Shown: one piece after another, positions 2,758 through 28,503 of the stretch
Numbering within the stretch: position 1 is the stretch's first letter
Layout: each line of letters opens with the position of its first letter
From: Lepidodermella squamata
Lineage: Eukaryota; Animalia; Gastrotricha
Length of the DNA stretch: 64,000 nt
Direction of reading: 5' to 3'
Assembly (NCBI GenBank): GCA_047495785.1
Contig: JBLDXI010000001.1
Location: 1,860,001-1,924,000 of the forward strand
Notes under the pieces: model-generated
Database searches by the model: none
Told to the model about the DNA's origin: nothing
The model's input: only the letters and a program-made list of their open reading frames with translations
Position numbers and translations under genes: made by a program

Positions 2758-3246
2758 TTTGCCTGGTACCGATGAGGATGGAAAAAATCCAAAACAGGAT
2801 GGAATGAGGATGGAAGAGCGGGGTGGCGACACACGTGCTGTCAGAGGCTATTGGAATTAATTGTCGACAGACTAGTACTTCAATTGCCATTAAAATTGTT
2901 AATTGTCAGGCGCTCGATTTTAACAGTATAAAACAGCAAGCCTTAGGCGACTAATCAATAAACGAGTGGTTATTCCTACTCCACGATTAACGCACGATTA
3001 AGCACCAGCGAACATTCACCATATGACTTTGGTCACGATGAGGCTCGCTTCAAAACACAGGATTCAATTGCCAGGAATTGATTTGAAAATACCTGTAGCA
3101 CTCATTTTTGTAGTTTTCATGGGCGGCAGAAAGACAACAGAATTCCCACTTGGAATTTTATTTGTTTATTCTTTCGAAAGGCAATTGACACATGTATTAT
3201 CTACTACCGTGAATAATATATTGATAAAAATAATCCATAGTTTCTT

Positions 3247-5582
3247 TTAGTAAAAGCAAGCGTAAACCTCCAAACCAGAATAGCCAGTAGCCGCATCCAC
3301 AGTGATGTAGTAATCCATTCCTGAATCTGATATTGGTTTAACTACCCATTCATTACTGCCCGTCCAGTAAGGCGCCCAGTCGTAGTCATTCGGAGTCGCA
3401 ACACGTCCCTTCTTAACAAACATATCGGCGTCACCATTATCGCCGTAAATTTGAACATTTTGAGTCGTTGCTCCGAGGGGCACAAAGACAACGTAGTAAC
3501 GAAGGTCACCGGTACTAGCCGCAGTGTTGTATTCAGAATCACAATTAGCTATTCTGATTGGGTTCGATGGTGATCGGCCCGGGGTGGATCTTGGCGTTGT
3601 CGTTGTTGTTGTTGTCGCGCGGGTTGTAGTTGTGGTAACACCAGGTCGGCGGGTTGTTGTAGTTGTAGTAGTCGTAGTTGTTGTGGGAGTATTGGTGTTA
3701 CCATTGCTGGGATTGGCTACACAGTCACTGATATCTAACCCACCCGCTTTCCAAGCATTGATAACAGCAATCGTGTCACCGCCATTAATTTGGTACTGTT
3801 TGACAGCAGATGCAACATCACAACCAGCTTGCTTCAAAGTGGTGTCCTGGCGCCAGAAAAATCGGTTGGCGTAGATGTAAGCGCGACCAGCGAGCCGAGG
3901 ATCCCACCGTGGACTCGTTGCTAGCTTGTAAAAGATGTAATTAGGCACAGCACTGCAGGTATGAGGATCTTGGCACACTGATTTGCCACCGCGGCAGTAA
4001 CGGCTATCTGGAGAGGGGAAGTACCACGAGTATTGGTTATTTTGGGTCATGTCTCGCAGGCAACGATCGTTATTCGCCATGCAATTTTGACCGACACACC
4101 AGTTGACGGAGCCTGAAGCGTAGAACTCAGCCATCATGCCAATAGCGTCTGAGAAAGCTTCATTCAAACAGCCCGGCTCTCCGGAGTAAACCAGCTGTGA
4201 ATTGTCGCTGATATCGGTAACCGCGTGACCGATTTCATGGGCGACTACATCTAGACACGTCCCGAGCGGGTAGAACATGGTACCACCGTCACCGAAATAC
4301 AACGCCTCGCCGTCCCAGTAAGCGTTGTCATAGTTCTGATTGAAATGTACGGCAAAATTCAAAATTCCGGTCGGGGTCAGCTGTGTCAAGCCGCCCCATG
4401 AAGCATTCTTGAGCATGTCCGTCGCTCTTATAGCGTTAGCGAAAGAATCTGCTACCACGCCATAGCCGCGGTTGTTGCCGTCAGTGGGACCAGTCGAGCA
4501 AGGGTATGTATAAACGCGGCTGGATGAGCTTAAATCACTGCGGCCGCTGTTCATATGATAAACGTTGACCGTTCCATCAGCATTTGACATCTGACATTGA
4601 CTTGGACTGAGTCTTTTCGCTTTCGAGGATAGATCCTCCTTGCCTGATGTTGAACCGTAAGTATAACGTCCGGTTTTTGAATTTCCGCCATCCCAGCCTC
4701 CTTTCAAACAACTCCATGAATCTTTCACGGTTTGGAGCTTAGTATCAACTAAGCATGTGAAGCAAATAGCCGCAACTGACTCGGTCATGCTAATGCGAGC
4801 AGCTTTAGAACGGATTTGGACTAAATCAGCATAGACAACACTATCAGGATCAGAGGTGTTGGTGCCGTAGTCGTAGACAAATCGTTCAGACGTAGTGTTC
4901 AGGATTCGTCCGTCAGTTTCGGTTTGATATTTTGTTTTGCAAACTGCTTCCGACATACCAGGGATCGGCAGAGACCTGCTAGCGCCTCTTTTGAATTTTA
5001 GAACTATGTCATTTTTCGGATTATCAGTGGATACAATGGCTAAGCCGCGGACGCCAGCTTTCTTTTCGACTACTGTGGCACCGCTGCCCCAAACTTTCAA
5101 GTTGTTGATCCTGTGTTCGTAACGTTTGATTACGTCGCCGTTTGGGAGTTCCATTTCATTGCCGGTTGGGACGATTTGCTCATTAGCACCTTCAGTGTCT
5201 GTTGCTAGGCCGAAGAGAGATCTGGAAGCGGGCTGCTCAATAGCTCTAAACGCTTCGTCTGTTTTAGAAAAAGTCAATGCTTGCTATTAACATTCGATAG
5301 GAGTAGAGATTTCTAACCTTTGTCTGGAGGGGCAGATTTTTGTCTTGCATTTCCAGATGCTGAGCTGCTTGGTGTAGCCCGAGTCGGCGCCCTCCTAGGC
5401 TGAGTAGTTCTTGTAGTTGTTTCTTCATCAACGCTACCATCATCATCATCGCCATCTTGGCCATAAGTATTTCTGCCCCCTCCGCGGCCCCAACCTCCTA
5501 GACCTCCTCCAGGTTGAGTAAATGCCAAATTCAGGCAATACAGGAAACAGAAAATCACAGCAAGAAAGCTTAACCTTGCCAT
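3247..5582 (-). CDS. M4 (thermolysin/LasB-like) zinc metalloprotease copy A: signal peptide, propeptide, catalytic domain, Thr-rich linker, PPC domain; single intron
   Basis: Motifs GGNSKTGRYTYG, NAYWDGEALYFGDGGTMFYPL, VVAHEIGH, GCLNEAFSD, DPHTCS and PPC motif GDADMFVKKG..YDWAPYWTGSNE. Signal exon 5582-5318; uninterrupted ORF 5277-3247. Confidence 0.93.
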
Positions 5583-5969
5583 TTTACTTCTTCGAATCTA
5601 CTGTACTCTTTAGACCAACGTGATTCCTTCTTATATCTAATGCATGCAGGTGTTTACAGGTGTAATTACACGCCTTACGTATGCGTGTTCGTGTGGCTGG
5701 CATCTTTATAACCACTCGATTACTGGCGGCAATAGTAATCGTGCTCGGCGTGTAATAAATGTCGTCATGTCGAGCCAGCTCAGAATTCAACTTGACAATG
5801 CTTAATTGTATATACCCATCGCCAAGTTACATAGCGGCATCTAATGAGTCATCCGTTTTATCAAGAATCGTCACCTACGTCTTCAACAATAAATCATTCT
5901 TGGAACTTGGAACGTAGTAAATCACTCTTGGATAACATGTGGTCACTTTGCTTTAAAATCAAAAGGTTA

Positions 5970-8900
5970 TCAATAGTAGCAAGCGTATAGCTCAAGTCCT
6001 GAAAAGGCGGAGGCTGCGTGTATCAAGATGTGGTAGTCCATATTTCGTCGATTGATAGGCTCTACCACCCACTCATCGGACCCTAAATAATAATTTTCAT
6101 TATTCAAAGACTTTCCTTCCAGATATACAAAATTACCTTCCCAGAAGGGAGCCCAGTCATATGAACTCTGATTGGAAATATCATGTGAGTAAGAAATATA
6201 TTTAGAACTTTAATAAGGTCTTACCAGTGTTGGCTGAGAGCCAGCTTTTATCTGTTACATAGAAAGTACGAGTTAAGTTTGCATTAGATTCAAGAGTTCT
6301 TAAACCCACGTAAAGATCTGCATCGCCATTCTTTGCATAAATTTGCACATTTTGGGTTTTGGCATTTGCTGGAACTGATATCACAAAACGGATTTGTTCA
6401 TTTGTTTTCGCCCAAATTCCTGAACATTGATAACATTTCATTAGACTCTCTTCATGTCAGCGAATAAATACCCATAATTGATTTGCAGTTTGTCAATCGT
6501 TTCGCCGGGAATAAAGCCATTGTGGTTGTTTGCTTCGCTGTTGTCGTACTCGGACGTTTAGTGGTAGTGGTGGTAGTGGTAGTTGTTGTCGGTTTGGTAG
6601 TAGTCGTTGTAACGCCTTTAATCGTGGGTACTGACAGTATTACTTTAGCGGGCGTCGTCGTCGGGGTGGTAGCAGCAGTTGTTGTACTAGCTGTAGTTGT
6701 GGTTTTTGTCGTCGTTGAAGTTGTGGGGGACGTTGGAGTGGTCGGCGGAGGCGTAGTCGTCGTGACCCATGGCTCCCAGTCCGAACCCTTCGTAATGCAG
6801 TCGCTAAGGTCAATACCAGCAGCACCCCAAGCCTTCCCGACAGCGGCCACGTCGCCCCCAGCAAGATTCGCCGTCTGAACCGCGGTTGCCACATCACACC
6901 CAGCTTGCTTGATAGTTGTTTCCTGCTTCCAGAACATGCGATTTGCAACCAGAAATGCGCGGGCTGCCGATTTGGTAGTCCAACCACTTGAAGTCGCTAA
7001 CTTGTAGAAGATGTAGTTCGGAATCGCACTACACGTGTGCTGAAACATCATCTTTCATATCAATAACTAAGCAAGTAAAGGTAATTACCGGGTCAAAGCA
7101 ATCAGATGGGTTTGCCTCATTGCAATATTTCGGGTCAGGGGTTGGAAAAAACCCAGAGTATGGTGTGTAAACTTTGAGATCGCGAAGGAATGGCAACGAT
7201 ACCATGCACTCGGGCGCGATCAGGAAATCGTTCTTCCCTGTTGCGTAGTACTCGGCTAATTCTCCCATTATGTCGGAAAAAGCTTCGTTCAAACAGCCAG
7301 GCTCGCCACTGTAAATCAACGCTGAACCACTGCCAGTGACTGCATGCCCGATTTCATGCGCAACGATGTCCAAGCATGACTGAAAGATGGAATGAGATTG
7401 TCAAACTGCGATGATTCTATGAAAAGACAACAACCCCTAAGGAATAGAAATACTTCGATCCATCTCCGAAATACAAAGCTGTGCCGTCCCAATAAGCTGG
7501 ATCACAAAAGTATGAGCAAGTAGTCGCGAATTTAAGGAAACTGAACTTGCCATTGTCGTATCCGCTTTTGAAATGAACAGCCATTTTCAGCTTCCCGGCC
7601 GGAATGATTTGTTTCATGGTTTCAAATCCCCCTACAGAATGGTACAGACTTGTCGCAACAATGAAAAAATCTCACTGACCGTATTCGGGATTGAGCAGCA
7701 TTTCGTATGTCTTCAGACCATTGTACAAAGTATCAGCTGGATAAGGTTAGAATTGTAAGGTTTGAAACTGATTTTGTGGTATGTACCTAAAGCGCCGTAA
7801 GATCGGCTATCATCGTCTTCGTCCAAGCCTTTGAGTAACATCAAGTGTAATTCGAATCACGCAGGTGACATGAAAATTACCAGTTTCACACGTAAAAGTA
7901 TGCGGCTTTAGGCTATCATCTATGTCCCAATAGCTATTATGCATGTGTAGCACCTGAACTGTCAAATCAGGATTTGATAGCTGGCAATTCGTGTCTGACA
8001 ACTTCAAAACAGGCAAAGGATCCTTGCCGTTCTCGCCGTAGGAATACTGCCCCATTCGCTTATTGCCGCCCTTGTACCCTGAGTGAATACCACTCCAATG
8101 TTTCAGCACCTTATTCGCTCGCGTGTCCACAAGGCAGTAGATCAAAAGAGGATCAAACTCATCGGAACTTGCTCGTTTCATCTCAACCAAATCTGCATAA
8201 ACTGTGTCGTTCAAACCTCCCGCTCCTCGGTCGTAAACAAAGCGTTCCAAGTCAAACTCCACATCAGTCAAATCCGCATTGGGCTTACTCGCTGAATATG
8301 CCTTTTTACAGGATTCTTTAGACGCCTCTTCCGCCGGCAATGAGCGCAAAGTGCCAAGACTGTGCTCATACTTCAGCGCGATATTTTGTGAGAGCCGCGA
8401 TGCAGATGGAGGCGCGAAAACCTTCCAAACGCCTGATTTCTTCTCGACAATCGTCGCACCGCTGTTCCAAACTCTGAAACCTGCAACGCGATGGTCGACT
8501 CGCCGCATCCGAGTGCCGTCTTTCAGCTCTAGAGGTGAACCAGAGTCTGTAACAGTTTCGAGGTTCGATGTTAATAGCAGCAAATCTCGAGATGTTGGCT
8601 TGGCAATATTCGCGAAATCGCTGGCTATTCAGGTGCAAGCAAGTTCGAATAGATTTACATTGAAGTCCAAGTATTGTACCTTTGTCTGGCTTCAACATTT
8701 TTATCCTGCCGTTATTTGGTGGATTTGGTGCCATCTGGAACACTGAGCCAAACTGTGCGATGGGCGGAAACGTTGCCTTTTTGGTAGTGGTAGTGGCTTT
8801 AGTGTATGTTTTCGTCACACTTCTCGTCGTAGTCTTCGAAGCAGAAAATGGTGTTGAATTGTATGCCCTTACCCCGATTCTGATTCCAACCCGGCCTTGC

Positions 8901-8995
8901 GAATTGGATGTAGCATTGTCGACGCCGTCGCTTTTGGCGAAAGATAGTAAGGTGATCAAACCCACCACAAACAATGGGTTCAAAGAATTTCTCAT
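5970..8995 (-). CDS. M4 metalloprotease copy B (about 12 exons)
   Basis: Signal MRNSLNPLFVVGLITLLSFAKS; GGNKRMGQYSYG; AYWDGTALYFGDG; IVAHEIGH; NEAFSD; AEYYATGKNDFLI; Thr-rich linker; PPC ending YACYY-TGA at 5970. 11 introns keep frame (one GC-AG at 7550). Confidence 0.9.
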
Positions 8996-9493
8996 TCTGT
9001 GCGGCTATGAAACACGTTATTCTATACGCTTTTAGCTGTTTTTACTCTATAATGTTATACTCCATTTTTTCGTAGAAATTAACGGCACAACACGTAAATG
9101 ATCCGCAAGTAAGATAAGTAAGACGTCTACGAAATCTGTATGCCGTCCGGTTTCGACTTCGTGCTTTTCCATTGCAGAAATGTCCGCGAAGTCAAAAGCG
9201 GATGCTATTTTTTCATTTTTTCAGGGCAAAATGAACCTTCAAGTAATGTCTACCGCAAACTGATCATCACGAACCAGACATTGACCTATCCTGGATGAAA
9301 TCGTCATCAAAGCTTCCGCTTAGAGAGATACCATGCCTTATGTGAATAAACGGACTACATGTAAACAAGTATATTGAATTTTATTGTTCAGATCCCGAAA
9401 ATAACAATAAAATCGCGGCTAATTTTACTAAAAATAGCATCCGCTATTATGGCAAATTAATCGTAACAAAGCGGAATCGTCTCGAATGGAAGC

Positions 9494-12400
9494 TTAAATG
9501 AAGCAGGCGTTGAGGGAAACGTCATCAAACCTGAGAAAAGAGAGTCTTAACACAAAAAAAAACGAAAAGTACAAGAAAAAACTTACGCTTTCGAGGCGTA
9601 AATCATGATGTAGTACCAGCCTTTGACAGTAATTTTCGTCCTAACCCATTCAACACTGCCCTTCCAGAATGGTCGATATTGATCCGTACTTCCCTAATCG
9701 CGATAAAAATGAGTTGGTGATGACTAAAAATAACAAATCTTCCTCTCACCTGGGCAACTGTTGGAATAGATCCAGCTCGGATGTACAAGTCCGCATCACC
9801 TGAGGAAAGTAAGACAATTCGCTATTAAATCCAGAAATGTTTCCAAGTTACCAGTGAATCCGTCGATGAAAACATTCATCCTATCAACGCTATCGGCAAC
9901 GAAAATCTTGAAATACAAAGCCTTGCCATCACCAGCTGCCAGGTCTGAAACAGCTTCATTTTAGCGAATGGTATCAAGTATATAGACAAAAACCTGCCTT
10001 CGTAATCTTCGCAATTCTGAATGATCCTAATGTTATCAGAAGGCGCCGGGGTAGCAGGAACAGGGGCTGATGGGGGCCTCATCGTAGCAACTGTAGGTAA
10101 AGGCCTGTAAGTAACCGGAGCGAAAGTTGGCCTGGTAGCTGCTTGAGTGGTCTGGCGGTTCGGGATAAGCCAGGTAAGCCAAGCTGGGACAGTGATACTC
10201 CACCCAGTAGTAGTAGCCCTAGTAGCCGGGGCAGCAGTTGGTCGGGGCTGGGGTGGCGGAGGCGGCGGGGTAGGTCTGTAAGTTGGACCTGGTGGGGCTT
10301 GGGTCGGTGGTGGCCTGGGTCCAGGGGTGGGCATGCATCCTGAAATATCGATATCCACAGCTTTGAAAGCTTCCATCAAATAACGCGGCTCGCCCCCGAT
10401 CCTGTACTGATTTGCTGAAACTGCCACGTCGCAAGCTGCTTGTTTCATTTTATGATTCTACAAGACCGATTTATGTTATAAAAAAAATATTTGTTGTAAG
10501 AAAAACCTTTTTCCAGAAGGCAGCATTCGCGTTCAAGAAGACCTTCCAAGCGCTTTTAATGTCCCAAGTTGGTGAGGTAGCTAGCTTATAGAAGACGTAG
10601 TTGTAGATGGCACTGCAGTGGTGAGGATCGGAATCTGCTGCGAATTTCGTGATTGACATAGGAATAGTCATATCGCGGAGGTAAGGTCGCTGTTCAACAT
10701 GACCGTATTGCTCATAATTCATAAATATTTCCAAATTCACGGCTTACGGATTTCATGCAACTTGCGCCAATTTTGAAGTCATTTTTGCCTTCTACATAAA
10801 ATTCAAGTGCTTCAGCCATCATGTCCGAAAACGCCTACATTAATCCATGATGCGTGACGTTATTTTAACCAAACAAAAATGCTTGCTACCTCATTCATAC
10901 ACCCAGACTCGCCTTCGTAGATGAGATCCGACGTCATTTGGGTGACGCTGTGGCCGATTTCGTGCGCAACAACGTCAGCACATGTGCACAGCCTGTCAGT
11001 CAATAAATTTTAAAATTAGAAAAATGAAGGCGAAATAAAAGAGATACACATACGGTACAAATGTGGAGCCTCCATCGCCTACATAAAACGCCGAACCATC
11101 CCAAAATGCGTTATCGTACCTTAAAGACCGATGCTTAAAGTTGAGAAACGGGAAAAGCTGGACCTTACTTCACGTTGAAATGCGCGCCAACATTAAACGT
11201 TCCCACCGGGGTGTATTTGTTGATGTCCCGAGAAAATCCTATAATGGAGCGATGAAGGATTAGGTAATTTTAATCCTAGTCAACGCGCTTTACCCCAGTC
11301 AGGATCCAGTAAAAATTGGACAGTTTTATTCGCGTTGTAGAAACAATCAGCTGTCGAAAATAATGTTGAATTCTGAACTTTTGATTGATCATTTTCTCAC
11401 CCATGGGCCCGTAGGCACCATTGATAGGATCATCCGGTCCGCTCTGGCAGTTGTAGGATACCACAGGCGTAGACCCGGGTGAAATTCGGCTGGACCTGCT
11501 ATTCATGTTGTAAACGGTAACTGTCTTAGCGGCGTTTTGCATAAGGCATTGGCCCTGGCTGTTTGTTATAGCAGGCAGCTGAGGGCGATTCGGAGATTCT
11601 CCATAGCGATACCTGATTTTTTAAAACAAACTTGAATCAACCAAGAAAACTTTGCATCGACTCACTTTCCAGTTCTTGTGTTGCCGCCGTAGCCGAAATA
11701 TGTGTGAAGGCCATCCCAAGATTTCAGGACCTAAAAAACTGTCAATAAGGAACGAAGCCAGGTGATTGCCCGAAATTTTAACCTCGCGTTTTCGCATGTC
11801 GATCAAGCACAGGACTCGGAATGGTATATTTTTGACATATTCTAAGCCCCTTATATCAGCTTCAACTGCCAGGGTTTGCGAGCCATCTGCAGCTTGGTAG
11901 AAATAAGTTCGTGTTTTGTTGTCGTAGACCTAAGAAAGACAATTTTCTCCTAAAATTACCAGCTCGAAGTCGAAATTTACTGTATCTCTAGATTCGACCT
12001 CCCAATGGACCTTGCAAATATTGATGGCCGCTGCATCTGGAACGCCGCTGTTGTCGCTTGCAGCTTCCCTCGGAATGCGTCGCAATTTTTGAGGGCCAGA
12101 TGCCGATCGGATCTTAGAAGGTCCAGCGCATAGACCTCGAATAGCTGGCGGTTTGCGAACTGCTACGCCAGAATTCCAAACAGGAATGTTGTCGACAGTA
12201 TGTTCCAGCCTAGATATGACTGACCCATCAGGCATTGTCACCTCTAAAATTGAATTCCATGAAGAAAAATGAAAACAAAAGCAATCGGCATGTACCGATT
12301 CCTGTGGGCACCAAGTCCTCGTTTTCATTGGTCAACTCGAAGATATCCCGAGCTCGAGGGGGAGCTTCATCATCGGCTAAACCTAGGCAAGGATCGTCGT

Positions 12401-12545
12401 CATCCACCGGGGTTTGCTCATCTGAATCAACTACGGTCGCGTTATCATCAGACTTCTCTAAAACCCTGAAATCAGGCCTAGCTATCCGATCAGCTGCGGC
12501 TATGTTGAAGATCAGAAAAAGGAGTAGAGCCTGTTTTATTGGCAT
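9494..12545 (-). CDS. M4 metalloprotease copy C (about 16 exons)
   Basis: Signal MPIKQALLLFLIFNIAAA; GGNTRTGKYRYG; NAFWDGSAFYVGDGG; VVAHEIGH; GCMNE|AFSD; DPHHCS; Pro/Thr linker; PPC GDADLYIRAG, ending NACFI-TAA. 15 introns traced. Confidence 0.9.
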
Positions 12546-12805
12546 TTCTCCTGTTACTCACGAAATTTCAGCTATTACACTGTACGGCTTCTTGAGGCCA
12601 CACATCAGTCATCACTAAAAAATTATTGACGCACTCTGATTATGTGTTTTATTGGCGATTTCACACGTTAAAAGCGAGTCTACTCCACACGAAAAAGCAA
12701 CATTTTTTAGGATCAACATGCGTCACGCCTAAAATGTCGCTAAATAGAAGAAAAGATGGGGAATTTTTTAAATACCTAAATGTCAGTCATAGAGTCACTG
12801 CACGA

Positions 12806-15800
12806 TCAAATCGCGCAAAAATCAAGCTGCAAATCTTGAAATCTGAAATAAATGAAAATTGATAAATGAAACAAAAGAGGTCGGCAAACCCCCTCACCCC
12901 TTGGTCGCAAAAATCATAACGTAGTACCATCCTTTGGTGACTATTTTCGTTCGAACCCATTCAATTGAACCTTTCCAGTAGGGGCGATACTGATCAGGCG
13001 GATTCTTTCGAATAAAACAAGAAAAATTTCCATTATTGATATGAAGACAGAAAGAAATACCGAAGATGTAGTCGGAAGGGTTCCGTTTCTTACATATAAA
13101 TCAGCGTCACCTTAAAAAATCATCTTAAATGTTGAAATGGGAATAAATTGAAGCTCACCATTAGCTGCATCGATGAAAACGTTGATGCGCTCAGCACTGT
13201 CTGGAACCATGACCTTGAAATAAAGGGCGACCCCGTCGTTGGCCGATAATTCTAGACAGAAAAAATCAAGAAAATTGCGATTACCGTAAATAGTAGCCCG
13301 GGCTTATGAATTTTAAATCCCTAAAATTTTAAATTTATTTAAATTTAAATTATTCAAATTTAAAATGAAAAAATGAAAAATCTCAAAAATCTTGGGATAG
13401 CATTATTTTTTATTTTTGGGGCCCTATCATACCCTCCAAACTGGGCTACTAAGAACGATGGGCTTCTATAAGCGAATGGGCGTCTATTTCAACATTTCCT
13501 GCATATAAAATACTTTTTCCTACCTTTGACTGCCTCGCAATTGTTCATCACTGGGATGTTGTCAGTTGGCGAGGCTTTGGTTGTTGCTCCACTTGTCGGT
13601 CTAACTGTAGTCGAAGTCGTCGCATTCAGCCGGGGAAGGGGCGCCCGAGTCGGGGGCGTTGTCGGTTTCGTCGGCTGGAGGGTGATAATCGTCAACCACG
13701 GCGGAAGAGATATGGTGAACGGGCTCGCTTTAGTCGTAGCTCGAGTCGTCGTGGTCGCGGCTTTTGTCGTAGTTGTCGTTGCAGCCGCAGTCGGAGCCGC
13801 CGTGGCAGGGGTGCTAGGCTTCGGGGGCATGCAACTAGAAATATCGATGTCTACGGCTTTGAAAGCTTCCAGAATGTACTGCGGATCTCCGCCGACTTTG
13901 AAACGCGACGCTGTGGTCGCAACATCACAAGCCGCGGTTTTCATGCTATGGTTCTGGAATTTTAAATAAAATCATAAATTTGACAGAAATTTGAGTAGAA
14001 CCTTTTTCCATAGAACGGCATTTGCATTTAAGAACGCTTTCCAAGCTCCCTTAATGTCCCAAGTTGGTGAGGTAGCCAGCTTGTAGAAGACATAGTTGTA
14101 GATCGCACTGCAATGGTGAGGGTCGGTTTCTGGGGTAAATTTGTTGTAAGACATCACGATGGACATATCGCGTAAGAACGGCCGCTTTCAATATAAATAA
14201 GATTGAAGATTTAGGATCGAATTTATTGAAATTTTACAGTTTGCATGCAATTTGCGCCGATTTTGAAATCATTTTTGCCGTTTTGGTAGAATTCCAACGC
14301 CTCGGCCATCATGTCAGAAAAAGCCTGCATAATATAAAGATATAAAGATATAAACCTGGTGAAAAATTCGCCTTAAAGTAACTCGCCTCATTCATGCAAC
14401 CAGATTCTCCAGAATAAACTAGATCTGACGTCATTTGAGTGACGCTGTGGCCGATCTATCAAATAGAGATCATATTAATCTGTAGCCACTTGAATCCGAT
14501 TCTTACCTCATGAGCTACAACATCTTCGCAGGCGCATAACCTAAGAAAGAAAAGTAATTTCGAGGCATTTTGGACGATTTTTTCAACGTACGGTGTGAAC
14601 GTTTTACCACCGTCGCCAACATAGAAAGCAGAGCCGTCCCAAAAAGCGTTGTCATATCTCACGTTGAAATGCGCCCCAACATTGAAAACGCCTGAGGGGG
14701 TATACTTTTTCATATCCTGCGAGAAACCTAGTTAAAATTTTCAATTTCAACGGGATCTTTTGTAAAATAAAACGAAGCCTAACCCCATTCAGGATCAAGA
14801 AGAAATTGAACAACTTTGTTTGAGTTATAAAAACAGTCGGCTAAATAAAATATAAAAAAATCCAACAAATTTAGGTGAATGGCCTCATTTTTTACCCAAT
14901 GGGCCGTATGCTGTGTTGACAGGGTCGTCCGGTCCCGTGTCACACGGGTAGGTCACAACTGGCGTACGACCAGGTACAATTCGACTTGTACTACTTTTCA
15001 TGTCATAAACTATGACCGTTTTATTCGCATTTTGCATTAAGCAGTCTTTTTGATCCGAAGATAGGGAAGGCAGTTTCGGCCGTGTTTCTCCGTATCGATA
15101 CCTAAGTAAAATTGAGAAATAAGGCGTAGGGGAAGTCCGAAACTTTCGCCTACTTTCCAACTTTCGCGTTGCCGCCATTACCGAAAAACGTCGAAAGAGC
15201 GTCCCACGATTTTATGATCTTTTACAAAATAAATTAGAAAAATTTAGGTGATTTCCCAATTTTTCACCTCATTTTTCTTAGCATCGATGAGGCAAATAAC
15301 GCGAAATGGGATATTTTTCGCGTATTCTAGGCCTCTGATATCGACCTCGACCGCGTCGATGAGCGACCCGCCTGTTTCCTGGTACTTGTAAAATTTCGAT
15401 TGACTCTCGTAAATCTCGTCAATATCAGTAAGTTCCCAATGCGTTTTGCATGATTTGATCGCAGTTTCATTCAACGCGTCAAGGTCTAGTGAACTAGCCG
15501 CTTGCCTTGCGACTCTGTTCAGCTTTTTCGGCCCTGAAGCTGATCGAATTTTTGTAGGGCCTGCACATAGACCTCTAATGGGCGGCGGCTGGATCACCGC
15601 GGCTCCAGAATCCCAGACTGGGATGTCATCAACGGTATGCTCAAGCCTCGAAATCACTGACCCATCAGGCATTTGAACCTCTAAATATCGTAGCGATAAA
15701 TATTTGGAAAATTGGAAAGAATCGGATGTTTATTACCGATCCCCGATTCAACCAGATCCTCATTATCGTTGGGCAGGTGAAAAATTTGGCGGGCAGTCGG

Positions 15801-16001
15801 CGGTGCTTCGTCTTCGGGCAAATCTTTGCATGGATCGAAATCTTCAGAATGTTGTGGCAGTTGGAAATCGCCCCGCTTAGCTCGCATCAGCAACCCATCA
15901 TCTGTTTTGAGTTCAGGTACGAAGTCGACCAATTTCCTGTTATTGGAGCAAATCGCTCCGTTTGTCAGCAGGAAAACAGGCAGCAAAATAGCCAACTTCA
16001 T
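12806..16001 (-). CDS. M4 metalloprotease copy D (about 15 exons), closest paralogue of copy C
   Basis: Signal MKLAILLPVFLLTNGAIC; GGNAKVGKYRYG; NAFWDGSAFYVGDGG; VVAHE|IGH split by an intron; NE|AFSD; DPHHCS; PPC GDADLYVRNG, ending DFCAI-TGA. 14 introns traced. Confidence 0.9.
13282..13488. mobile_element. Degenerate MITE-like insertion enlarging an intron of M4 copy D
   Basis: Inverted repeat tagtagccc (13291) / gggctacta (13443), AT-rich core, three tandem gggcNNcta motifs at the right end. The host intron is ~270 nt versus ~50 nt at the same position in copies B and C. Confidence 0.55.
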
Positions 16002-16402: not shown

Positions 16403-18420
16403 TTACTCCGGCAAATTGTAGAATGAGAAATTCGTCACTGAGACCTTCTCCGATGAAATCGGCTTCCTTGAAATGACTAGACCATAGGGCGTTTCGAGCC
16501 GAATCAAGGTGAACTGAAAATTAAACAAATTAAACAAATTACAAATATTCAAAAATCAGGTTTCAATTTATCCAGCAAAAATTAGCGGACTTATTCCTGA
16601 GAGTAACCTCCGTCGTGTTATCCCTCTTCATGAGAAGGATTTCGCCATTCGTCTGTGCTAGGTCGGCACGAGGCTACCGGCGGCGCTCCCCTAAGCTCAA
16701 GCACAAGGCTATCGCGGCCGGTGACAGGAGCCAATGACCGGTATTTGGGCATCTCTGCCCAGCTACTTTCTAGCCGTGGACCGGAGAATTTCAACCCAGG
16801 TCGCAGTTGAACAACGAATGTGTTCCGTGTGTTAACCTGATCAGCGAACTTCAGGCTATAGGCCCGCCCATTAGTTATGAATCATCAACACACATATAAA
16901 CAAAAACGCACTCGAGAAAAAATATCCACCCAGCTCATTTGCATATGCACACAAACAAAAATAATGAGGGGGTAAAAAAAATACTAGAAAATAATAGTAG
17001 TAAACACATACTTTGAATTCTTTACCCGGATCGTCCGTATTGTTATCCTGATTTGACGGAATAGCAATATTCACATCGACGTTTACCACAGTAGGCTCTG
17101 GAATTGCGACTGAATCGCCAACTTTCATCAAATCACTGAAAATTATAGTGAAATATTTCTGAAATTAGGAATTAACAATTGTAATTACGGTGCCATGTTG
17201 TGTATAACAACTGGAATACAATACGGAGCTGAAGATTCGTTAGCCACATCGCATAGACAGAACGCTAGCTCTGCATCAGACTTCGCAAATGCCACGGTTT
17301 TACCAAGCACAACAACGCCAGTATTTTGCCCGACTTGTAATTCAGAGAGAGGCACTCTTCTCAGGCGCAATCCGCTCACAGGGTCTCTACAATAATGAGA
17401 AAAAAATTGAAGAACGGATTTCTCATTTCGGTTCCTCACTTGTATACTCCCAAATCCAAATCACTAATGCTTTGGAGCATTTGCTGAAGCCGCTTAAACT
17501 TAAGGCGGCCCTTTTCTTTGCAAATGGTATTCACTGTTGCGAAAAACTGAGCAATTTGCTCAAGCTTGCTCTTCGGATCCGGCCATGTCGGATCAAGTCT
17601 AGCAGCTTGGACCAAGTCACTAATTGTCGGTTTATACTCGCACAAGTATCGATAGAGCATTGCGCGATTGTAATACATATCAGGTATGGCTCGAATGGCA
17701 GGGTCTTTTTCAGCCTAATAAATGCGTTAAACTTATAGCTCTGAGATCTCAGATAAAAACAGTTCACTCCCTTACTTGAGTATATGCTTGAAGAGTATGA
17801 GTCAGCATCAATCGTTTGTTCGTAGAAACAAAGAACATTGACATGTAGGCATTGCCCAAACATAGCCAAGATTGGCCATCAGTAGGGTCGAGAGCTACAG
17901 CTTGCTTTGCTCTCTCTAAGCTGTCCTCAAGTTGATTAACTCTCTCCTGCAAATTTAATCCAGAATTAACGGAGCCAGACAGTGCTCGAATGGTCATAGA
18001 GACACCGCGAAGACTCGCTTTGTTAGACTTCCATTTCAAAGCATCGGTGAAGCAGTTTTTGGCTGATTGAACGTCTCCTTTCTTCCAAAAACACTCGCCC
18101 AGGAGATTCCACGCTTCAACAGATGACGGATCTAGTTTCACCGCTTTTGATAATGCATCGAAAGCTTGCTGGCTAAAATCTGGCAGCACGTTATTGGCTT
18201 TGCCAACGCATAAAAAATACGAGCTTTTCGAAAGCTTGTTTGCATTCAGTTCTATTAGGTCTTGAACAGCTTGCAACTCAACTTTCAGAAGATCTATTTT
18301 CTTCGAGGCGTCGCTCAGCGGGTGAGTTTCAAAGAATTTGTCCCTGAACTCAAACAGCTTGTCAATGGATAGCTGTACAGCGACGAGAGCATCAAGTTCC
18401 AGATCTTTCTCTGATTCCAT
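16403..18420 (-). CDS. TTC5: Tetratricopeptide repeat protein 5 (5 exons)
   Basis: LFEFRDKFFETH, LSKAVKLDPSSVEAWNLLGECFWKKGD, AKQAVALDPTDGQSWLCLGNAY, C-terminal OB region VGDSVAIPEP and FTLIRLETP. Exons 18420-17776, 17714-17440, 17386-17189, 17135-17012, 16513-16403. Confidence 0.93.
16585..16869 (-). ncRNA. RMRP: RNase MRP RNA, nested in the last intron of TTC5 on the same strand
   Basis: Terminal P1 helix (gcgggcctat / ataagtccgc); P3 with AACACAC internal loop; CR-I GAAATTCTCCG (16792-16782) complementary to CR-V ACGGAGGTTACTC (P4); P8 hairpin ggcta-GAAAG-tagct (GARAR loop); P9 gggca-GAGA-tgccc; P19 hairpin; ~285 nt followed by T5. Confidence 0.88.
16894..16944 (-). promoter_or_regulatory. 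Putative type-3 Pol III promoter elements for the MRP RNA (TATA and octamer)
   Basis: TTTATAT about 25-31 nt upstream of the RNA 5' end and a perfect octamer ATGCAAAT at 16944-16937 on the minus strand. Confidence 0.5.
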
Positions 18421-27317: not shown

Positions 27318-27836
27318 GCTTCAACTTTTTGAAAGTTGAAAGCGTGATAAAATAAATTTTCGGTTGATACAAAAAGCTGATCAACTTCGGTTGTTCGATG
27401 ACTCAACCGCAGGCCTTGCTGTTAACACGCTTAGATTCTTTATAATGATGAGAATGACTGCACCTGCTTGCAAAAGTCTCCGGTTGAATAGATTCGAAAG
27501 AAGAGCTGAGGCGTTGAAACTCGCGAAAATTTCGCCATTAACAGCTTAGGTGCGCCCAATTTTAGTTAATTTAGTTTACACTACAATTTAGTCAGTCATG
27601 CGGAAATCCGTATTTTGTTCCGTGATGCTGCTTTTGTGCTAGCTGTTACCGCAGGTTTCAGGGAAATTTCACCGGCGAGTAAAACACTATTTTTACCAGG
27701 ACATTGCAAAATTATTACCTGCATATTTTTCGCAACTGCAGGGTGCCCTAATTTCGAGGGCGGAGATTTTTTCTGTATATCATATTGTCGCGTTCAGCGT
27801 AAGCAAAAGTCAAAAGACTTATCTTTATTGTACATC

Positions 27837-27910
27837 GGTTCCGTTGTGTAGTGGTTCATCACGTCTGCTTTACACGCAGAAGGTCGCGGGTTCGAACCCC
27901 GCCGGAACCT
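27837..27910 (+). tRNA. tRNA-Val (TAC)
   Basis: GGTTCCG/CGGAACC acceptor stem, TCTGC-TT-TAC-AC-GCAGA anticodon arm, GGTTCGAACC T-arm, T4 downstream. Confidence 0.92.
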
Positions 27911-28503
27911 GATATTTTATGAGTTTTGGAAGAAATGGAACTAGTACCCGAAATAACCGCACCTCGAATAAATATCGGCACAGGGGGCTCAATTTTGGGA
28001 CCTTTTTCTGATTTGTTTGTCAACTTTGATCTAAAATCTAAAATAAGTACCTATCTGTTGACCATTGACCATGGCTGGGCTGGGAAATTTCACTCATTTA
28101 TTCTTTCAAGCATTCGACGCGTGGCCTGGTAGCCAATGAAGCGCCGCTATACATCTAGTATGGACCGCTAGTTTGAAGCAACCCTTGAATGAAGCTCTAA
28201 CCACTCGATACGATATGTTTTCGATAAATCCGTAACTTGGATCAGCTTCACCTCATGAAAGAATGTGATCAGCTTCATCAAAAACATGATTCAACGCCAT
28301 ACAAAAAGACAAATGGAACTGTTTTCCCAACATAATTTATTCATTAGTATTTGATATAATATCATCAGACAAGATTTCTGCCTCGGTAATATTTCGCAGG
28401 TTTTGCATTAAAAATTTCGAGATGTTAAAACTATCGCTGCACAACGGGCTTTAAAACAACGTAATCAAAAACAGAGAATGATTGCTGTTAAAAATTGCCA
28501 CTA

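Follow-up and report, generated by a model that had tools for sequence, protein, structure and literature searches.

Probable in-place loss of all but the first intron in a thermolysin-like peptidase gene of a gastrotrich tandem array

The question raised by this locus is how one gene of a tandem array came to have a single intron while its neighbors have many. Four head-to-tail genes for M4 (thermolysin-like) peptidases, A to D, were found on the minus strand within positions 3247-16001 of a 64,000-nucleotide stretch of Lepidodermella squamata DNA (hereafter, the window), which is part of a 5.18-Mb contig in a 121-Mb eukaryotic assembly. A first-pass annotation had noted that gene A has one intron and then a 2-kb exon, against 11, 15 and 14 introns in B, C and D, and our spliced aligner returned the same counts. 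Gene A probably lost at least four, and by Dollo mapping seven, introns in place in the array and kept only the 5'-most one; this in-place loss is well, not overwhelmingly, supported by the sequence comparisons given below.

Gene A and its single intron

Genes were located with a list of open reading frames (ORFs) and tblastn, and domains were assigned with Pfam. Introns were mapped with our own program for the spliced alignment of proteins to genomic DNA (BLOSUM62 scores, affine gap costs, introns of GT/GC-AG type in three phases), and all gene models are predictions from homology and the GT/GC-AG rules. Gene A (3247-5582, 758 residues in all) has two exons. Exon 1 (5318..5582, 265 nucleotides, ORF 5313..5582) holds the start codon, a signal peptide and a low-complexity Gly/Asp/Thr stretch and ends with PDK plus one base, followed by the donor GTTAGA at 5317. 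Exon 2 (3247..5258, 2012 nucleotides, ORF 3247..5277) is uninterrupted and collinear with every paralogue, and shows no insert where these have introns. Its product comprises a pro-region, an M4 catalytic domain with the motifs HEIGH, NEAFSD and DPH, a linker rich in Thr and a C-terminal domain of PPC-like type, and the exon closes with a TAA stop (3249..3247), about 80 nucleotides past which lies an AATAAA signal on the same strand (3165..3170). The marks of the M4 (thermolysin) family were all present, namely both Pfam domains (PF01447, Peptidase_M4, 1.6e-16; PF02868, Peptidase_M4_C, 2.5e-20) and, in alignments, the three motifs; PF04151 gave no match in the Pfam search at E ≤ 0.01. Gene A is a predicted secreted thermolysin-type (M4) zinc protease gene, its reading frame and catalytic motifs intact.

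The sole intron of A (5259..5317, 59 nucleotides, GT-AG, phase 1) was recovered by spliced alignment with the N-terminus of B as the query. It interrupts the codon after PDK in phase 1, as does intron 1 of B (8679..8625), which bears out the earlier claim that the two genes share this position, and the same intron is found in the paralogue F. It is probably in H too, and is missing from C, D, E and G and from two genes of a related animal described below (M2 and the L022 gene). Several acceptors keep the frame of A open, one of which, at 5280, would give an intron of 38 nucleotides, under the reliable family minimum of 45 (median 55, about 135 introns). With the acceptor at 5259 the length is normal and the spacing to the conserved F..QP..SR motif is the same as in B and F. 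This acceptor was preferred on these grounds, and the intron is best read as 59 nucleotides (5317..5259).

Shared introns and the place of gene A in the family

Beyond the array, the same genome holds five further close paralogues (E-I) about 300 kb away, the singletons J and K, and nine distant copies (N1-N9) on another contig, which makes an animal-only family of about 20 genes with many intron positions common to members. A database search added relatives from one related animal, which lie on metagenome contigs of eukaryotic appearance (ENA samples ERZ23486787, ERZ27332993 and ERZ27333047): M1, M2, M3, M4 (at L022; hereafter, the L022 gene, M4 being also the name of the family), MCD and MJ. 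A family-wide intron map was made on one alignment with the introns marked, using the uninterrupted exon 2 of gene A as the ruler for all other copies; site numbers are residues of this ruler, with the phase in brackets. Nucleotide contexts were checked for near-coincident sites, and 276 and 277, 373 and 374, and 319 in phase 1 and phase 0 are distinct sites that were kept apart.

None of the shared introns downstream of intron 1 is present in A, and 7 of the 10 downstream introns of B lie at sites used by other paralogues. These are 276(1), shared with C and D (YGxx/A/D, slashes marking the break); 295(1), with C, D and G (W/G); 319(1), with F, G, H and I; 339(0), with E to I; 584(1), with C, D and also MCD (NC+4/x; 6471..6420 in B); 629(0), with E, F, H, I and J, and within 1-2 codons also in C, D and M1; and 640(1), with F and G. 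The other shared sites are 183(0) in C, D, G and H, 374(1) in F, G, H, I and all N genes, 402(0) in C to J, 615(1) in C, D, G and M1, and 477 and 665, which like 584 are found in C, D and MCD. Such introns as the metagenome genes have form subsets of those in their counterparts and are therefore older than the species split.

Three positions had been singled out by the first-pass annotation as common to B, C and D and missing from A. They correspond to 276, 295 and 584, all phase 1, and were seen in the spliced alignments. As evidence of ancestral introns they differ in value: 295 is also in G, while 276 and 584 are the weakest, for within the clade of A only B has them, the other carriers being C/D. 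We take as the firm set for ancestral presence 319, 339, 629 and 640, which B has in common with its nearer kin E-I. The occurrence of 276 and 584 only in B and C/D, array neighbors that are far apart in the tree, might reflect copying between neighboring paralogues by gene conversion, an idea we hold to be doubtful; if true, this one locus would preserve a record of how introns were gained, spread laterally among paralogues and were lost in blocks.

Two trees were made, the first with distant outgroups (11 far bacterial M4 proteins) and the second with 15 closer bacterial outgroups from a full HMMER search, with MCD and MJ added and N2-N7, N9 and the far bacteria left out. In the first, the animal genes form one clade (100/100) and A falls inside an 11-gene clade (96/99). 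In the second, the corresponding values are 100/100 and 99/100, and the groups outside the clade of A, (C,D,MCD), (J,MJ,N) and K, all bear introns, several at the same sites (402, 629, 374, 183, 295 and 615). Dollo mapping places eight introns on the parent node of A (intron 1, 276, 295, 319, 339, 584, 629 and 640), for which A shows the pattern 10000000; under gains only, 34 gains would have had to occur in parallel, each matching another in site and phase. That A is nested among intron-rich genes agrees with the earlier proposal that its intron-poor state is derived and arose in place and that the 5'-most intron survived.

A Cys-bearing insert of 10-15 residues before DPH (ruler 420-437) was considered as a root marker and set aside, a similar insert in some bacteria meaning that it may be ancestral. 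Members of the 11-gene clade have the insert, as do some bacterial M4 proteins, and the C, D, J, K and N genes lack it, which hints that the latter are one clade with a common deletion of it; this bears on the root of the family.

Mode of loss and alternative histories

A reverse-transcriptase model of intron loss was reportedly set out by Fink in 1987 and by Mourier and Jeffares in 2003. For gene A, conversion with spliced complementary DNA (cDNA) is the most likely mechanism. The family would have entered the animal lineage from bacteria and then gained many spliceosomal introns, of which the ancestor of A would have borne at least four, by Dollo mapping eight. The body of A would then have been replaced, via homologous recombination or gene conversion with the reverse-transcribed spliced mRNA of A itself, in one or a few events, and the conversion tract would have ended short of the 5' end, so that intron 1 was kept. 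This model of cDNA recombination and its predictions are standard, as summarised in PMC3652778. Like known cases of mRNA/cDNA-mediated intron loss, A shows the exact loss of an adjacent run of introns, with the 5'-most intron, the locus, the promoter and the first exon kept; unlike them, the cDNA intermediate, germline expression and the number of events are inferred, the event is old (47% identity), and other genes of the family keep only 3' introns.

The removal was exact, with no indel at six of the seven lost sites (276, 319, 339, 584, 629 and 640). At the seventh, 295, there is a 3-residue gap one codon later, common to M1, M2, M3 and I, of which I still has introns. All seven downstream introns expected in A are gone and form a contiguous run, for which at such an age one event is indistinguishable from several. 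Exact and contiguous loss is what the earlier proposal of joint removal by recombination with a cDNA predicts; the single event is a reading that goes further, as the 47% identity of A and B left time for serial losses. Stepwise loss, one or a few introns at a time by separate cDNA conversions or exact genomic deletions, is possible, if unlikely. With A only 47% identical to its nearest paralogues there was ample time for it, gene E has lost scattered, non-adjacent introns, and the genes of the metagenome relative show block losses that differ in extent and polarity. But the lost sites of A are all contiguous and all but one exact, and many independent exact deletions would be unlikely without a spliced template, a single tract being simplest.

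The best-placed independent precedent for block loss in the family is the L022 gene, which falls inside (G,(M4,(E,(F,H)))) at 100/95, is without 11 inferred introns and retains just two, both 5'. Some of the introns of C/D survive in MCD, and some of those of J in MJ. Losses in the family are block-wise at either end, which supports conversion tracts rather than a strict 3' bias.

Several results weigh against loss by conversion in A as described. The 3' bias asserted in the first-pass annotation fits A and the L022 gene, but MCD and M1 have the opposite polarity and retain only 3' introns, so there is no general bias; in A alone the bias is not significant, the survivor being the first of eight introns with a chance of 1/8. 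With the far outgroups, approximately unbiased (AU) tests were not significant for A at the base (p 0.060) or for the intron-rich genes apart from A, M1, M2 and M3 (p 0.096), and with the closer outgroups the rejection of basal placements of A is marginal (p about 0.046). Under equal weights, Dollo mapping takes 33 gains and 82 losses, against 67 gains for a gains-only history; as equal weights favor gains only, the case for loss depends on the standard assumption that introns are seldom gained in parallel at one base and phase. Finally, a position of A beside M2 and M3 is as likely as one beside B (log-likelihood difference -0.16, AU p 0.51), and the 3-4 residue indel by site 295 groups A with M1, M2, M3 and I, not with B.

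Some of these results, the tests with far outgroups and the equal-weight counts, favor a history in which A (with M2/M3, perhaps M1) keeps a near intron-free bacterial structure, the others having gained introns later, in parallel where the sites coincide. The bacterial type of the family, whose nearest relatives are bacterial M4+PPC proteins, and the fact that the five M4 genes seen in that animal's metagenome contigs are all intron-poor point the same way. We nevertheless judge such a primitive state of A very unlikely. With A inside the 11-gene clade of the second tree, moving it to the base costs 42 log-likelihood units (AU p 0.047), and placing A, M1, M2 and M3 outside all the rest costs 35.7 (AU p 0.046); a tree with A outside the others, which the first-pass annotation had named as the one that would allow later intron gain, is thus marginally rejected. 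A itself has intron 1, in the codon and phase in which B and F have it. M1, the L022 gene, MCD and MJ each have introns at sites used by paralogues in this genome, so these introns are older than the species split, and the seven shared downstream introns of B would need independent insertion at already used sites.

The idea that A is a retroposed, partly spliced mRNA which retained intron 1 and landed beside its parent gene is extremely unlikely: its 2 kb of coding sequence without introns does resemble processed or semi-processed retrogenes, with their long intron-free coding region from a spliced message, but A stands within the tandem array, co-oriented with B and 387 bp away from it on the downstream side, it begins with a start codon, signal peptide and exon 1 of its own and retains the ancestral intron, the flank sequence as read contains no poly(A) tract, flanking (target-site) duplication or other retroposition scar, though decay is expected by now, and no intron-bearing parent gene is present in the genome. 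The genome search turned up no further copy of A, the next best match being 42-47% identical, which excludes a cDNA contaminant, an assembly artefact or a dispersed retrocopy, the last already thought unlikely in the annotation given the tandem position and the kept intron 1.

The age of the in-place loss depends on the sister of A. The free tree joins A and B at 95/94, and of the topology (A,B),(C,D) expected earlier the (C,D) half is solid and the (A,B) half shares its likelihood with A beside M2/M3; a clade of B and M1 is not rejected either (AU p 0.094). M1 (L019:10001-12333; two introns only, both 3') and M2 (L019:12532-15036; an entirely intronless ORF of 834 codons that includes a signal peptide) are a tandem pair in the same order as B and A, and in tblastx the best-scoring matches of M1 were on B and those of M2 on A, both of which favor orthology of A and M2, as does the 3-4 residue indel by site 295. 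As A next to M2/M3 is equally likely, the loss may be old, and it would either have followed the A/B duplication, in A alone, or have preceded the divergence from the metagenome animal. Intron-rich versions of A in related species, which the annotation had suggested looking for, did not appear: the possible orthologues M2 and M3 are intronless over the part that aligns. No synteny was found between the flanks of A/B and the M1/M2 contig apart from the M4 genes themselves, and one protein scan and one alignment scan of JGI metagenome contigs for closer relatives gave bacterial-level matches only.

Bacterial origin, relatives and neighboring genes

The closest non-animal relatives of the family are bacterial M4+PPC proteins, mostly of Pseudomonadota. 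The best non-animal matches are all bacterial-type, and in comparison with M4 proteins of bacteria, 15 close and 11 far, the animal M4 genes form one clade (100/100). Judged from these comparisons, the family appears to have been horizontally acquired from bacteria and must have started without introns. Gene A resembles the bacterial M4 peptidases with PPC (vibriolysin/pseudolysin/haemagglutinin-protease type, Pseudomonadota) in Peptidase_M4 plus M4_C, HEXXH, NEAFSD, DPH, the domain order and the PPC-like end, with about 600 residues aligned to P0038, P0059 and others. Set apart from these proteins in a clade of their own, the animal genes have Thr-rich linkers, signal peptides of eukaryotic type and spliceosomal introns. 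Nothing relevant on the transfer of M4 genes to animals came up in a full-text search of the literature.

Given an intron-free bacterial ancestor, each of the at least 33 intron positions of the family would be a post-transfer gain. Gene A is a new example of a known process, multiple-intron loss with the first intron kept, and is clean rather than surprising. Its value lies in the setting, where the bacterial origin fixes the ancestral intron count at zero and many of the present positions are common to paralogues, with repeated block-wise losses in this genome (A and E) and in the related species, in which all copies seen are intron-poor. With transcripts and closer genomes, the family could be used to measure how fast introns are gained and lost and with what polarity, the ancestral state being free here of its usual uncertainty.

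All M4 genes found in the metagenome animal (L019, L021, L022, L032 and L034) have 0-3 introns. In addition to M1 and M2, M3 has no intron in its aligned part, the L022 gene has two 5' introns, MCD (L032:5992-8229) three 3' ones and MJ (L034:4961-6876) one. Their introns are nearly all at sites used by paralogues in this genome, the second intron of M1 being 1-2 codons from 629. This suggests intron loss across the whole family, perhaps the whole genome, in that animal.

The distant copies N1-N9 (G000:C13:3.08-3.63 Mb, L023-L031) aligned over the catalytic region only, and no PPC-like part was recovered. They have four fixed introns, 267(0), ~289(1), 329(1) and 374(1), with ~289(1) assigned between 278 and 293 in N3, N6, N8 and N9. 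The intron at 374(1), common to the N genes and F, G, H and I, may be the oldest of the family. When some 145 introns of the family were compared all against all, no introner-like repeats emerged, the short matches being confined to two long introns and to recent N-clade duplicates. The two long introns, F 229(0) (563 nucleotides, 5612-6174) and I 319(1) (381 nucleotides, 27585-27965; both in LX, C1:2156001-2190000), have a common 23-nucleotide stretch that is 96% identical and may be a small repeat inserted in both.

Gene B (5970-8995) was modeled by spliced alignment and by reading the sequence. From the 5' end its introns are at 8625-8679, 7829-7880, 7737-7786, 7632-7679, 7497-7550, 7380-7434, 7040-7088, 6420-6471 (the eighth, at site 584), 6252-6309, 6168-6224 and 6083-6136. 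The fifth, at site 319, is a GC-AG intron with the donor GCAAGT that is stop-free in frame and, if overlooked, reads as an 18-codon insert; 8 of the approximately 145 family introns are of the GC-AG type.

Genes C (9494-12545) and D (12806-16001) each have one dubious intron in the Thr-rich linker in addition to the 15 and 14 counted, probably an alignment artefact in both. The two are a young pair (69% identical) with three introns private to one member: 14456-14506 in D, at 348(0), which splits the zinc motif between HE and IGH, and 11930-11980 and 11120-11168 in C, whose private sites are 124(0) and 315(2). These introns are missing from the sister copy, MCD and all other paralogues, and are candidates for recent intron gain.

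A TTC5-like TPR gene (window 16403-18411) adjoins D, and its counterpart at L032:3057-5129, with tblastx segments of 66-73% protein identity, adjoins MCD; B and A are without counterparts at this TTC5-M4 locus of the metagenome relative. As MCD adjoins TTC5 in the way D does, it is the positional orthologue of C/D, and since a TTC5 gene stands beside an M4 gene in both animals, this linkage is older than the species split.

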